Source: Gekko japonicus (lineage: Eukaryota). From it: DNA of 64,000 nucleotides. Positions 27,601 to 52,600 of this stretch are shown here, piece after piece. The notes under the pieces are model-generated. The model was not told the DNA's origin and ran no database searches. It saw only the letters and a list, made by a program, of their open reading frames with translations. How positions within the stretch are numbered: the stretch's first letter is position 1; each line of letters starts with the position of its first letter. The stretch is from contig NW_015164664.1 in NCBI RefSeq assembly GCF_001447785.1, positions 650,274 through 714,273 on the forward strand, given 5' to 3'. The position numbers were made by a program, and so were the translations under genes.

Positions 27601-30600
27601 AATCTGCCTGCCTCCGGGGCCTGGGATTTTTTGATACACCCTTCTAGCCTTTACCAGTGAGAATAGCCAAGGAGCTGGTCTGGGTGGTGAGAATGACGGA
27701 CCTTTGCTGAAATTGCTGCTTCCCCTCTTTTGTCTCCTGTTCTCAGACTCCTGTCTCCATCACCCAGGTTTCCCTATCTTCCATGATGTCTTGAAGGTGA
27801 GTGGGCCTGAGAGCTCTACTGAGGCGCTCTCAGCAGAATTTTAGGCAGGGGGACATGTGTGGGATTGCATGGATACTGGTCAACGGACAGGTATGAGGAC
27901 TGAAAGGGACGGATTGTGGTAGTGTCTGCACAGGGATGTCTAACCAGCATTTCTAGTAGCCCACGAGGCCTGTTTTTCTTACTTCCCTAGAGGCCAAGTA
28001 AGCATTGTCTGGCAAGGGGAAAGCGGTGGGAGTGTTTTTGTAGCAGCTTCTCCCTTGCTGCACAAAACACAGCCTGGTGCCATTTGGAAAGAGGTGCTCT
28101 TTGCTGTTCTAAGCTGCTGGTAGATTTCCCAAAAAGTACTTTCCCTGATGGTCGCTAGAAGAACATCTCCAGTTATCGCTGGCGGCCATATTAGTGATTT
28201 CTGTATTGAGGAATGGGATGCTCATGCTGAATTGTTGTCTGTAGGGCTGGTCTTGCTGCAAGAAACGAACCACCGATTTCTCCGAATTCCTCTCCATAAA
28301 GGTACGTCTGTGTCCATTGTCACCCATGTGATCTGCCTGGTTTTGCTGGTTTCTACACGCTATTTGTCCTGCGAACCTAGCAGTTCGAAAGCAAGAAATT
28401 GCAAGTAGATAAATAGGTACCACTTCAGTGGGAAGGTAACAGCGTTCCGTGCGCCTTGGTGTTTAGTCATGCCGGCCACATGACCATGGAAATGTCTTCG
28501 GACAGCGCTGGCTCTTCCGCTTTGAAATGGAGATGAGCACCGCAACCCTAGAGTCGGACTCGACTGGATTTCGAGCAAGGGAAACCTTTACCTTTACCTT
28601 ACATGCTATTTGAGGTTAGAGACTAATCTCTGCTAAATCATCAATCCTAATGAGGTTTTTGAATTTGTAACTTGTCCTGTCTTAGAAACTTGGGCTTAGT
28701 TAATGACATGAGTTACATTTATTTAAATTCTGACCCAGCTTGCCACTCCATCTGCAGGGGGAAAATATTAGTTTGAAATGGATAATAGCACAATGGTTCT
28801 GGCCCCCTAACTTCATTTTGAAACATTGGTCCGTGTACTCCAGTAGGGTCAACCTTGTCAGGCAGAGAAAGACCAGCTACCCCTGAAGATGTCAGGGTTC
28901 AGTCCTGGCACCTTCTGAGGGCAAAGTACTGCGCTTCCACAATAATGCAAAAGCGAGTAGCTGGTGCATGGAACAGGTGAAGGGCTTACATCAAAAGAGG
29001 AGCTGGTGTTCCCTGTAATGTAACTATGACAGAAGGAAGCAATCCTGCATGTATGTCTACTCACTAACAAACTTGCAGGTTGATCCCATGCTTTCCTGCT
29101 CTCACAGCTTTGAAATCCTGAAAATGATAATATTTTGCAGTACTTTGATATGTGAGTATACTGTGAGAGCCAAGTAGGTGCTTATTCTGGGAGTCAAGGA
29201 GACTTTGTTCATCTGTTAGGGCATTTCTCACTGCTTTAAGAGAAATTGCTTATGTCATGAAGTTGGAGGGAAAAGGCCCAACTCGATGCATTTTGTTCTT
29301 GAAGGGCTGCACAAGAGGGTATCACAGCAATGAGAAGCCCCCAGAGCCTGAGGAGCCTGAGTCAAAAAGCAAAACCAGCTCTGAGATCATTGTTCGGGGG
29401 CCAAAGTCAGTAGAGATGATGGAGCGTGAAAGACCCAGGTGAGCCTGTGGGAATGGTCCATGCATGTGTTTTCCTTCTGGGGCTAATGGCATGTGACTGG
29501 TTTGGGAGACGTTTGACAGTCTAGTCAAGCATCCTGTTTCCAACTGTGACCAGCCATATGCTTTTGGGAAGCCCAAAGGCAGAGTGTGAAGGCTAGAGCC
29601 CTCCCCTTTTCTCTTTGTCCAACCATCTGGGCTCAGGGTAGACTGCCTGTGAATTGGGTAGACCAACAAGATTTTTTGGGTATAAGCTTTCAAGAGTCAG
29701 ATCTCCCTTCATCAGATATCTTGTTGGTCTCTGTGCTACTGGACTTGAATGTAGCTGTTCTACTGCAAAATACACGGCTACCCTCTGAAACTGAATTGGG
29801 AAGGTTTCATTAAAATGTTGTGGCCAGTAGCTATTGATATGTCTATTATTTCCTAGGAATTTGAGTTATTTTTTTTTAAGCCATCTGAGCTTAGTGGTAG
29901 AGAGTTCCATAAGCTAATGCTACCTTGTGTGAAGGAGGACCCAGTGTGGAGGAGTGGCGGGGCTCCTGTCCTGTTGGCACCTCTTTTTGCTTGAAGTCTG
30001 GTGCTAGTTTCTTAGCCTTCAAAGCTCTCCCAACCTCTCTTGTTGGCTTTCTCCAGTCCAGATGAACCAATGAAGCTACTGCCAGTGAAGGTATCTGAGT
30101 CCTTAGAGCAGGCCCTAAAGAAGCTGGATTTGTCATCCAAGGAGCAACCAGCAGTGCAAGGCACTGTGGGCACTGGTGAGAAAGGGAGGAAGAGGCCAGA
30201 CTGGGAAGGGAAGGGTGTCGTGTTTGGAATTTGTGTGTCATTGTTTGAACTCTCAAGGAGAATCTGAAGGCTGCATCCTCCTTGGATAAGGAAGCAGGGT
30301 TGAGAGACTGCAGGCTTAAAGGGCCAAACCTCCACATTGTATGTGGCTGGCTGGAAGTAGCCTTTGGTTCTGGGAAGCTCTATGTGGGGGGAAGGTGGGG
30401 AGGGTTGGGACTCCAGCCCACACCTCTACTGCTAGGGCTGGATTGAGCCTGATAATGAAACTGCACAATAGGCCCCCTGCTGAATTTGAGGTTCCTTCTC
30501 TATTTGGCATCCTCCATATTCCTTGCTGTAGGAAAATGTGAATTACTGGTATTCAGAAATAGAATATTGATTACATTATAGATTGGGCTTGGCATGTGCA

Positions 30601-49600: not shown

Positions 49601-52600
49601 CCAACACATCTTGTCTGCCTGGGGCACAAACCTCATAGGCCCTTGGTGGATGTCCACTGTGTCTTGTAGCCATTGTTGCTGGCCAAGGGGGTTGGGGAAG
49701 TGATGTTATATTTACTTGTGTGCGCGCATGGCTGTCCCTTAGGATACTGGTAGAGGAGCTGGTGTACCTGTTGGGGCTGAAATCTGGGAGAGGTCAGATA
49801 GAGTGTGAACTTCACTCTCCCTGTGATGTTTACCTGTCTGTGTTGTGCCTACCACTGAGGTGGGCGTGCACTCACTCTAAGTCCCCACGGCAAGAAGCTG
49901 TCAGACAGCATTCTGTGCCACGTGCCCTATCGTAGGGGTTGTGGGGTGATTTCCTGAAAACTTTTGTAGGATGGGGAGGCCTGATTGGGTGTTGCAGAAG
50001 GGCACAGCCAGTATGGGGGAGGATGCTGATTGGGTGTGCACTTGGTTGGCATCCTATGCTGCCTGGGTTCTCATAGGTGTGGCTGTGGCAGTGTGGGGGA
50101 CAATGCTCCCTCTAAGTTGTGGAGTCTTGTGAGCAAAAATTCTACTTTGCGAGCTACTTGCATTAAAGTTGTGAGTGAGCGATTTGGCTACTGCATAAAT
50201 TAGTTTGCTCTGGAGGCATCCTTCCTGAGCTAAGATGAAAATGTGTGAGCTGGAGGCTAAAAAAACTGTGAGCTAGCTCACACTAACTCAGCTTAGAGGG
50301 AACACTGGTGGGGGGTTGTGTTATTTGGCCCATCATGGGCACCAATGGGCTATGCTGCCATTTTTACTGGTGCAACTTTGCGCCTGTTCGGGTGTGTGTG
50401 GGGGGGAGTGTTTCCACCCTGAAAACACTTTGGGAGCTCCCTAATTTTCAACATGCCCCTTGGAACACCCACATCTATGCTTTCCCGGGTTTGTGCTGAT
50501 ATTCTGCTGTCATGTGGCCAGGGGGCCTCTGTGCTGATGGTACTACATGATGCAGCAACACTTGTGCCTTGCGCTGGCGTAAACAGCCCTTATGCCAATA
50601 TAAATCTCTGTTATGCTGACGTGGGGGGTCGGCTTCATATGCAGATTGCACTGTTAAATGCTTAAAGCAATATATCAACTGTAAAGGAATACTTATTAGT
50701 TAACAATTTCAGCATTTAATGTTAAGCTGAGAGTAAAATTTCTGGAAATTTTGAAGGCAGTGAGATTTTTGGGGAAATTGCAATATATGCAGTACTTTCC
50801 TATCAAATGGAAACTCCTTTTGCTGATTTAACAATATGAAATGCATTATTTATCTTAGAATATAAAATTTTACTATTTAGCATATTTATGGAATTTAAAA
50901 GTATAAATGTCTTTGTTTTTTAAAAGGAACAATTGCAAGTATGCCCAATACTTCAGAAAGAGTTGCAAATTGCTGCACACTGTACTATCAGAGCACATTT
51001 CTGTTTAATTTTTACCATCTGAGAGGCAGGAAACAATAAAAGTTGAAGGTTGAAATCAAGAGAATGTTTTATTTGGACAGAAACTCTCCGAGAGTCTGAA
51101 TGAGTAGGACTGCCAGGATGTTTGGATATTAAGCTAGCTGAGAAATGGGAGTAAGCTCCATGTCACCGAGGAAGCTTTGTGACTGAGTGGCGATTTGAAC
51201 ACTAGTGCAAGTTCAGCTCTCTGTTATTCACAGTGGTAACTTCCCGAATGGGGACTTCAAACAGAACTTCATGTTTTCTTTGCTCCAAGTACAGCTGGCC
51301 TAGTTACTGTCTGACTAGGCCTTGGAAGCTTGTTGGGCAACCTTGTGACCTTCAATCTCTCAGCTTAACCAACCTTGCAAGGTGGTGGTTGTGAGGATAA
51401 AGAGGAGGAGGGCAGAACTATACGATAAGCTGTTTTGGGTCCTGATTAGGGAGAAAAGCAGGATAATAATTTTTAAACCACTATAGTTTTGTGATTAGAT
51501 CAAGGTGGGTAGCCATGTTAGTCTGTCTGTAGCAGTAGAAAAGAGCAAGAGGCCAGTAGCACCTTAAAGACTAACAAAACATGTGGCAGGGTATGAGCTT
51601 TCATGAGTCACTCAAGACAGTGTATCCACCTGGACTGAATGGAGACCTAGGTTTCCCATCTTATTACCAATGCTGATTTCTCCATGCCTATTTACCCCTC
51701 TGTATATCTCACCTAAATCCAATTACGCCTGCAGTTGTCATTCACCTGCTATTGTCATTTGCCTGCTAATGTCGTTCAGCATCTGAAATCACTCCACTTT
51801 CCAATAAGTAGGACAGGTGGACTCCCATTCTAGCTGTATCTGAAGACGTGAGCTGTGTCTCACGAAAGCTCATTTCCTGCCAGATATTTTGTTAGTCTTT
51901 AAGGTGCTACTGGGCTCTTGCTCTTTTCTACTATAGCTTTGTGATTGAGAGTACCAGATGCTGCCTTCAGACATAATTATATCAAACACATCATAATTTT
52001 TAAATTTTATTTAGAACATTTTATTTTATTTTAAAACATGTATATAATAAGTTTTTCAAAAAGCATGTGTAATGAGAGAAGGATATGGAAAGCTTTCCAG
52101 GCTTTTCCAAACACCGTGAGGGCTGGAAACTCTCGTTTGTCTTCCTTTTGAGAGGAAAGTTCTCAAGATGCTGCATGTGCCTTGGCCCTGTTGCTTTCCA
52201 TATGCACAGCCCTGGTTTTGTCTCTGTGATGTTGAGGTTGAAGTGCAGATCGTCTGTCTGTGCTGAGAGGCTTGCTCTCTTCCAGGGTCTGAAGATGGGG
52301 ATGGGATTATTCTACCCTCCATCATTGCTCCTTCCTCTGCTGCCTCAGAGAAGATGGATTTCAGCAGCAGCTCTGATTCTGAATCAGAGTCGGGATCCCA
52401 GGAAGCCAGACAGGCAGAGTCCAAGGAAGGCCAACTCACTCTGCCGCTTGCGGGAATCATGCAGCGAGATGCCACCAAGCAACTGCCTAGTGTAACTGCA
52501 CTGTTCCCTGAGTTCCGACCTGGCAAGGTAGGGCTTCAGGAGGAGCTGGAGCAGGAAGGAGGGGAATCTTAGACCTGGTTCCTGCAGATGTCTCTGTAGG

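Follow-up and report, generated by a model that had tools for sequence, protein, structure and literature searches.

Minimal hammerhead ribozymes have been described in the pseudo-long terminal repeats (pseudo-LTRs) of metazoan Penelope-like elements (PLEs; Cervera & De la Pena 2014, PMC4209133). Here, we analyze hammerhead motifs of this kind in a 64,000-nucleotide stretch of the Gekko japonicus genome (contig NW_015164664.1, positions 650,274 to 714,273 of the forward strand), called the window below and used for all coordinates. The published motifs fall into covarying families and have an unpaired nucleotide after A9, a G10.1-C11.1 pair, and a palindromic 15.2-16.2 sequence, features that emerged without being imposed by the descriptor (PMC4209133). 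Their copies are mostly solitary, with some opposite-strand pairs 100-700 bp apart, and are present in turtle and snakes. In vitro, single motifs were inactive, while dimers cleaved weakly (PMC4209133).

PLE insertions are highly 5′-truncated, are often preceded by an inverted 5′-truncated copy, have target-site duplications (TSDs) that vary in length, and are extended at one end only (Craig et al. 2021, PMC8557442, where the insertion structure is cited from Pyatkov et al. 2004). Non-LTR retrozymes form a second group of related elements in animals (Cervera & De la Pena 2020, PMC7229834). According to a recent preprint, the vertebrate members, including those of reptiles (mean consensus 176 bp), derive from PLE pseudo-LTRs, and both PLEs and PLE-linked retrozymes are found in reptiles and not in birds or mammals (Li, Clavereau & Pollet 2026). 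PLEs account for about 1.5% of one gecko genome. Against this background, the copies in the window are probably relic insertions of a high-copy PLE-type retroelement family, or of a non-autonomous derivative that used the PLE machinery.

Three intact motifs carry this finding. The ordered-motif pattern CTGANGA-N(6-26)-GAAAGCT was matched three times in the window (29685-29715 on the minus strand, 39900-39928 and 51840-51870 on the plus strand), against 0.18 matches expected, and none of 100 shuffles reached three. A structural descriptor was then built from the core, 0-1 extra nucleotide, a stem II of 4 bp or more with a loop not exceeding 8 nt, and GAAA, combined with a palindromic A-N-N′-U, an H17 other than G, and a helix I of at least 2 bp. 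Applied to the 64 kb, it returned exactly three matches, 29684-29715(-), 39900-39929(+) and 51840-51871(+), whereas 300 dinucleotide shuffles yielded none. The hammerhead observation is thus confirmed as real and well above chance. The original prediction had placed hammerhead cores at these three sites and a degenerate one near 9725-9760, and at all four the sequence reads as written there, stem II included. The fourth is indeed degenerate, having GAAAGUU in place of the second box and two broken stem II pairs.

The three intact motifs can be parsed as CUGAUGA-A-GGGAG/CUCUU-GAAAGCU-U (29.7 kb), CUGAAGA-A-GUGUG(C)/(G)CACAU-GAAAGCU-U (39.9 kb) and CUGAAGA-C-GUGAG/CUCAC-GAAAGCU-C (51.8 kb). In each, the conserved core, C3-U4-G5-A6-N7-G8-A9 and G12-A13-A14, is exact and in type I order, and the palindromic AGCU directly follows GAA, with no helix III hairpin. 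The extra unpaired nucleotide after A9 is A, A and C, respectively. H17 is U, U and C, giving the cleavage triplets CUU, CUU and CUC. Stem II is 5-6 bp long. The 10.1-11.1 pair is G-C in the 51.8 kb copy and in a related copy at 72-113(-), which belongs to the same subfamily (C, see below) as the 29.7 kb motif. In the 29.7 and 39.9 kb copies it is G.U. These look like C-to-U decay, judging from the sequence, because the other subfamily C copy retains C at this position.

The motifs resemble the minimal hammerheads of PLEs in their type I topology without a helix III hairpin, the palindromic AGCU, the unpaired nucleotide before 10.1, the G at 10.1 and the long stem II (5-6 bp). The existence of several covarying consensus families per genome, the occurrence in reptiles, and the combination of mostly solitary copies with pairs on opposite strands are also common to both. 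The differences lie in helix I, which has 2-3 bp in the window motifs and 4-5 bp in those reported, in position 11.1, which is U in two of the three window motifs, and in the spacing of two of the opposite-strand pairs, whose arms are closer than the reported 100-700 bp (45 nt apart at 29.7 kb and 4 nt at 39.9 kb). The hammerheads curated in Rfam share the core boxes CUGANGA and GAAA with the window motifs, but in the latter the helix III hairpin is missing and helix I is very short.

An alignment of the flanks showed that all copies belong to one repeat family. In its 3′ module, the minimal type I hammerhead is joined by a linker of about 25 nt to a strongly conserved block (TTGTTRGTCTYTAAGGTGCYACTGGAC), which is followed by a further 30-45 nt, and the repeat unit terminates in ...CAGACYAACAYGGCTACCC. 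A profile made from this alignment (nhmmer) detected 12 arms in seven insertions, which together occupy about 2% of the window. The insertions range in size from 90 to 430 bp and none of the seven contains coding sequence. The arms have differing start points and a common ...GGCTACCC end, i.e., 5′ truncation with a fixed 3′ terminus. Pairwise identities (66-87% within and 48-73% between groups) separate three subfamilies: A, with the copies at 51.7 and 36.2 kb; B, with those at 39.9 and 9.7 kb; and C, with those at 29.7, 0.1 and 40.3 kb. At least three subfamilies had been proposed, and three are what the window alone contains. The inverted partner arms, the TSDs and the insertions at 1-161, 36218-36309 and 40333-40506 had escaped the earlier inspection.

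The tail of the unit may itself be structured. A candidate long-range stem, TTGTTRGTCT / AGACYAACA, surrounds the conserved AAGGTGCYACTGG block, for example at 51505-51582(-), 9771-9838(+) and 40431-40503(+). In RNAalifold this stem shows one compensatory G-C to A-U exchange between subfamilies, with a weak consensus energy of -0.73 kcal/mol; on this modelling, it is a candidate 3′ recognition hairpin. Searches with the family tail gave no matches in a viral contig collection. In a metagenome contig collection, 11 loci were returned and rejected, since all were chance matches to a 19-nt seed with flanks lacking similarity. A literature search with tail sequence strings retrieved nothing relevant.

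Five of the seven insertions are fold-backs, in which two 3′-module arms stand head to head, and all three intact hammerheads sit in such units. The 29.7 kb motif, an intact subfamily C hammerhead at 29684..29715(-), lies in a fold-back at 29660..29791(-), whose inverted arm extends to the GGGTAGCC terminus. A perfect 13-nt inverted repeat (29660-29672 / 29718-29730) closes a 45-nt loop containing the hammerhead, and the unit is bounded by a 12-nt TSD with 92% identity (29650-29661 / 29792-29803). The intact subfamily B hammerhead, at 39900..39929(+), is part of a fold-back at 39778..39968(+). Its arms (39814-39895 / 39900-39981) are 82 nt long and 83% complementary with a 4-nt spacer; within the left arm is a degenerate antisense hammerhead at 39870-39895(-), and the TSD is a perfect 14 nt (39764-39777 / 39969-39982). 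Considered as a microRNA, the hairpin at 39799-39990 was rejected: dozens of Rfam microRNA-precursor models gave sub-threshold matches (best 50.6 bits against a gathering threshold of 84), as expected of a generic hairpin shape.

The third intact hammerhead, of subfamily A, was located at 51840..51871(+) within the largest fold-back, 51497..51929(+), with 78-nt arms that are 91% complementary (51534-51611 / 51855-51932) and a 243-nt spacer, itself family sequence. The hammerhead of the left arm is deleted, and the TSD is 17 nt long with 94% identity (51480-51496 / 51930-51946). Within this spacer, whose assignment to the family comes from the reads described below, positions 51728-51778 comprise three tandem 17-nt units (CCTGCAGTTGTCATTCA and variants).

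The remaining copies are more decayed or truncated. Two have a single arm: the subfamily B copy at 9710..9842(+), with its degenerate hammerhead at 9728-9753 and a full tail to the ...GCTACCC terminus, and the subfamily A copy at 36218..36309(+), which is 5′-truncated within the hammerhead and flanked by a perfect 10-nt TSD (36208-36217 / 36310-36319). At the 5′ junction of the latter, a 14-nt tandem duplication (36214-36241; TGGATGACCATGAA / TGGATAACCATGAA) mimics, together with the flank, a CUG-GAUGA box. The other two are subfamily C fold-backs. The one at the window edge (1..161) has its center inside the hammerhead, and its left arm keeps stem II (GGGAG/CUCUC) and GAAA without a CUGANGA box. 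The other, at 40333..40506, has a degenerate hammerhead on the minus strand (CUGACAA ... AAAUGUUU). Its right arm starts at 40422 (ATACCC...), the first nucleotide past the predicted cleavage site, and extends as far as the terminus. This start is what a cleaved RNA template would yield; as it concerns one of the 12 arms, it may be chance.

The inverted arms raise the question of mobility as DNA: the fold-backs could be non-autonomous DNA transposons of the miniature inverted-repeat transposable element (MITE) type, with terminal inverted repeats and an incidental hammerhead-like sequence. The inverted arms of five of the seven insertions and the flanking direct repeats agree with this. Nevertheless, TSD length varies among the insertions, with 12, 14 and 17 bp in the fold-backs and 10 bp in a single-arm copy, which has a TSD of its own. 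The arms are also unequal, as in each of the three fold-backs with an intact hammerhead one arm is complete to the GGGTAGCC terminus and the other is 27-60 nt short, and the position of the fold-back center within the unit differs from insertion to insertion. To these can be added a read depth that climbs towards one terminus and a stem II whose pairing is kept by compensatory changes (both discussed below). A cut-and-paste MITE is therefore highly improbable. Target-primed reverse transcription is indicated instead by the variation in TSDs and 5′ ends, the inequality of the arms and the existence of single-arm copies. A classification as DNA transposons, named in the original prediction as a refuting outcome, is likewise contradicted by the unequal arms, the TSDs of 10-17 bp and the single-arm copies with a TSD.

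Penelope-type insertions, in turn, match closely. Those described (PMC8557442) have in common with the window copies the 5′ truncation, the adjacent inverted copy, the variable TSDs, the extension at one end and the hammerhead near the 3′ end. They differ in that the window copies have no open reading frame (ORF) and no partial tandem (pseudo-LTR), and in the length of the one-sided extension, 27-60 nt here and 30-40 bp in the description. Arm-to-arm identity within single insertions is 83-91%. Together with the decayed partner arms, this suggests from the sequences that the insertions are old.

Covariation was assessed on eight aligned hammerhead segments by counting the pairs of helix I (three) and helix II (five). 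Paired cells amounted to 84%, against 71 ± 4 in shuffles (none of 500 reached the observed value), while slid registers gave 18-55%. The covariation score was 0.34, against 0.18 in shuffles (again, none of 500). In stem II, two pairs have exchanged both partners, one between G.U and U-A (split 3:3) and the other between A-U and U-A (split 4:3). The compensatory changes follow the subfamily split, so they represent just two to three independent events. The claim that stem II differs between copies and keeps its pairing, as in covariation, thus held. From the alignment, this pattern is consistent with selection on once-active master elements rather than with function at the loci in the window.

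Public reads were used to gauge copy number and transcription. Three RNA runs and one DNA run from the same organism were mapped on 51400-52000 at a likeness of at least 80%. A total of 42,930 DNA contig pieces map to 51484-51945, and the RNA runs contributed about 11,900, 1,300 and 5,700 reads to the same interval (about 18,800 in total). Depth is high over 51484-51945 and near zero in the flanks, so the whole TSD-bounded unit, including its spacer, is a high-copy transcribed repeat. Summed DNA depth reaches 7.6-8.3 million over the tail and 0.5-1.4 million over the hammerhead, and is lowest upstream. This rise towards the tail is the gradient expected of 5′ truncation. Opposite-strand joints in other contigs indicate that other fold-back copies exist. 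Compared with the family majority among the best-supported rows, the 51.8 kb hammerhead differs at the extra nucleotide (position 51847, C in this copy and A in the majority) and at two loop II positions, the core being unchanged. The consensus of the loose ends behind 51612 corresponds to the antisense of the complete 5′ half of the hammerhead, so the family carries a motif of which part is missing from the left arm of the 51.7 kb unit.

Whether the family descends by truncation from an autonomous PLE or is a short element of its own is a separate question. The copies could belong to a SINE-like (short interspersed nuclear element) or retrozyme-like non-autonomous element, mobilized in trans by PLE enzymes, whose unit would comprise the hammerhead, a tail of about 100 nt and up to a few hundred nucleotides upstream. 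The small size of all seven insertions (90-430 bp) and their lack of coding sequence would fit such an element, as would the derivation of reptile retrozymes of 176 bp mean consensus from PLE pseudo-LTRs in the 2026 preprint. In addition, four of the 12 arms start 2-5 nt from the 5′ edge of the hammerhead, and agreement in the loose-end consensus drops just upstream of the motif. Family-wide homology also fades near this 5′ edge, though cleavage would fall on the 3′ side. Strong 5′ truncation of an autonomous PLE would look identical, however, and upstream, the 51.7 kb copy continues into likewise repeated sequence for more than 200 nt. The family is like the non-LTR retrozymes in being short and non-coding, in its type I hammerheads, in its relation to PLE pseudo-LTRs and in its presence in reptiles. 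Retrozymes, however, are tandem head-to-tail repeats with canonical hammerheads making loop-loop contacts, whereas the window copies are dispersed or inverted and have minimal hammerheads. No direct (head-to-tail) tandem pair, the defining trait of retrozymes, was found in the window, where all paired copies are inverted. On balance, we consider a separate short element a possible but less likely reading.

The exons of the host genes that could be detected are all on the plus strand. NONO has its RRM exons at 6.0-7.2 kb, followed by NOPS, coiled-coil and C-terminal exons to 11.87 kb. A CHORD/CS gene resembling ITGB1BP2 is recognized by CHORD signatures at 28.25 and 32.5 kb and by CS exons at 33.3 and 34.3 kb. 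A Rho GTPase is encoded by the single-exon ORF 42425-43042, and a TAF1-like gene by a TBP-binding exon within ORF 46621-46998 and three ORFs with DUF3591. The 9.7 kb copy is in sense orientation in the NONO intron that separates the exons at about 9.0 and 10.3 kb, and the 29.7 kb motif is antisense in the intron between the two CHORD exons. The 39.9 kb motif lies in sense orientation 2.5 kb upstream of the Rho GTPase ORF. The 51.8 kb motif, also sense, follows the TBP-binding exon and is placed between ORFs of the TAF1-like gene, in what would be an intron. Both the host genes and the orientations were as given in the original prediction.

A further part of the original prediction, that sense copies could dimerize and cut host pre-mRNA, is unlikely to hold. 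In this scenario, the sense copies in the TAF1-like gene, upstream of the Rho GTPase ORF and in NONO would be active ribozymes affecting host expression. The core nucleotides, the palindromic AGCU and a permitted H17 are indeed intact in two of the sense copies, and some in vitro cleavage has been seen with dimeric constructs of such motifs (PMC4209133). In those same assays, however, single motifs gave no detectable cleavage and the activity of the dimers was low. A lone motif cannot form helix III, so the active form needs two copies that supply helices I and III to each other. No transcript in the window offers a second sense copy, since the two intact plus-strand motifs are 11.9 kb apart and in different genes, and a dimer formed in trans would be held together by 2-3 bp plus 4 bp. 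In NONO, the copy is degenerate.

Folding predictions also speak against cleavage. Unconstrained folding of the single motifs and of homodimers did not return the catalytic fold, and the canonical structure was therefore evaluated explicitly. As a dimer it has a predicted energy of -1.3 to -4.7 kcal/mol, versus -19 to -39 kcal/mol for alternative dimers. Both intact sense copies would be paired with their inverted arm in long hairpins. For the sense RNA of the 39.9 kb unit, the predicted hairpin spans about 85 bp (-130.7 kcal/mol, z = -19) and leaves no part of the ribozyme core unpaired; for that of the 51.7 kb unit, the GAAA box and the cleavage site are predicted to be paired within a long stem (-183.4 kcal/mol, z = -12). 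The 29.7 kb unit alone keeps its motif in a loop, closed by the 13-bp stem, and it is antisense to its gene. Finally, among the roughly 18,800 RNA reads over the family, ends do not accumulate anywhere, and depth is continuous across the predicted cleavage site, although rare cleavage could be missed, as these are ordinary cDNA (complementary DNA) libraries and the reads are pooled over copies at a likeness of at least 80%. Host pre-mRNA cleavage by the sense copies is thus disfavored on these models, and we give active ribozymes at these loci very little credence.

Some fold-back copies might act in the host in other ways. The fold-back form puts near-perfect 80-bp double-stranded RNA (dsRNA) hairpins, with the ribozyme core in the stem, in sense orientation into introns of genes with broad expression (TAF1, for example). 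Such a hairpin could serve as a substrate for editing, Dicer or dsRNA sensing, or as a conditional pre-mRNA cleavage site, if the hairpin were opened or the copy paired in trans with a family transcript. We regard any such role as most improbable.

For the Penelope-type origin itself, several observations weigh on the other side. Helix I has 3, 3 and 2 contiguous pairs in the 29.7, 39.9 and 51.8 kb motifs and so is shorter than the 4-5 bp reported for PLEs, even if at 29.7 kb the 13-bp stem past an internal loop could lengthen it. Position 11.1 is U rather than C in two copies. The Rfam hammerhead models (Hammerhead_1, Hammerhead_3, Hammerhead_II, HH9 and HH10; RF00163, RF00008 and RF02275-7) gave no match, either over the whole window at the gathering threshold or at the three loci at E ≤ 10. 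Membership in a curated Rfam hammerhead family thus fails, and the search with Infernal suggested in the original prediction came out negative where the descriptor search succeeded; this is expected, because the motifs have no helix III hairpin. The covariation comes from eight sequences in three lineages, and the reads leave room for rare cleavage.

No ORF for a reverse transcriptase (RT) with a GIY-YIG domain, which the original prediction had proposed to look for in linkage to the repeats, was found among the 150 longest ORFs of the window when compared with Pfam. None of them matches GIY-YIG, and the sole RVT_1 match is a fragment 12 kb away, the remainder being host genes. This fragment, at 16197-17252(+), is an open 256-amino-acid C-terminal part of an RT (RVT_1, E = 4.5e-16) with an FADD motif; from the motif and the C-terminal region, the RT in the window is that of a CR1-type long interspersed nuclear element (LINE). 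Just upstream, 15459-15782(+) is a separate fragment that appears by eye to be LINE-derived. Both lie between NONO and a carrier gene and are unrelated to the hammerhead family.

With these points set against it, the attribution to Penelope-like repeats stands in respect of the minimal-hammerhead features, the fold-backs, the variable TSDs and the amplified, transcribed family, and lacks an RT/GIY-YIG ORF in the window. PLE descent is inferred by analogy from the ribozyme type, the insertion signature and the taxon, and the reading as a ribozyme-bearing repeat of Penelope type is probably right.

Other features of the window can be noted briefly. The interval from NONO to the CHORD/CS gene includes, at about 18500-23100, four ORFs with matches to the mitochondrial carrier family (best E = 2.8e-19). 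A tRNA-like sequence at 61232-61303(+) scores 43.9 bits against the Rfam tRNA model and looks like the head of a tRNA-derived SINE rather than a tRNA gene; it may be of the squamate Sauria SINE type. An assembly gap of 37 N at 35041-35077 follows the last CS-domain exon that could be detected by about 0.5 kb, and no repeat copy comes within 1.1 kb of it. The insertions are delimited by their own TSDs, so none of the results depends on continuity across this gap.

A plausible history of the PLE-type copies can be assembled from the literature and from their architecture. In the active element, the hammerhead would reside in the pseudo-LTR, and helices III and I would form solely between two copies, so that the ribozyme would process tandem, more-than-unit transcripts and not single copies. 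The enzymes making the copies would have been the RT and endonuclease of a PLE. Integration would have proceeded by target-primed reverse transcription from nicks staggered at a variable distance, yielding the TSDs of 10-17 bp, and priming would often have occurred from both nicks, leaving two 5′-truncated arms head to head. The present copies would be solitary and old, and passive when transcribed within introns, the hairpins of the two sense copies burying the core.

The phenomenon itself is already published and the current understanding of it is unchanged. What the window adds is that minimal hammerhead motifs of the PLE type are abundant in this squamate genome, and that most of the copies found here form fold-backs, in which the ribozyme would be masked at the RNA level. 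In annotation, intronic motifs of this type are to be treated as transposon relics, not as host ribozymes. Moreover, the family is a usable data set for studying the role of the hammerhead in the PLE life cycle and how dual priming yields inverted copies.

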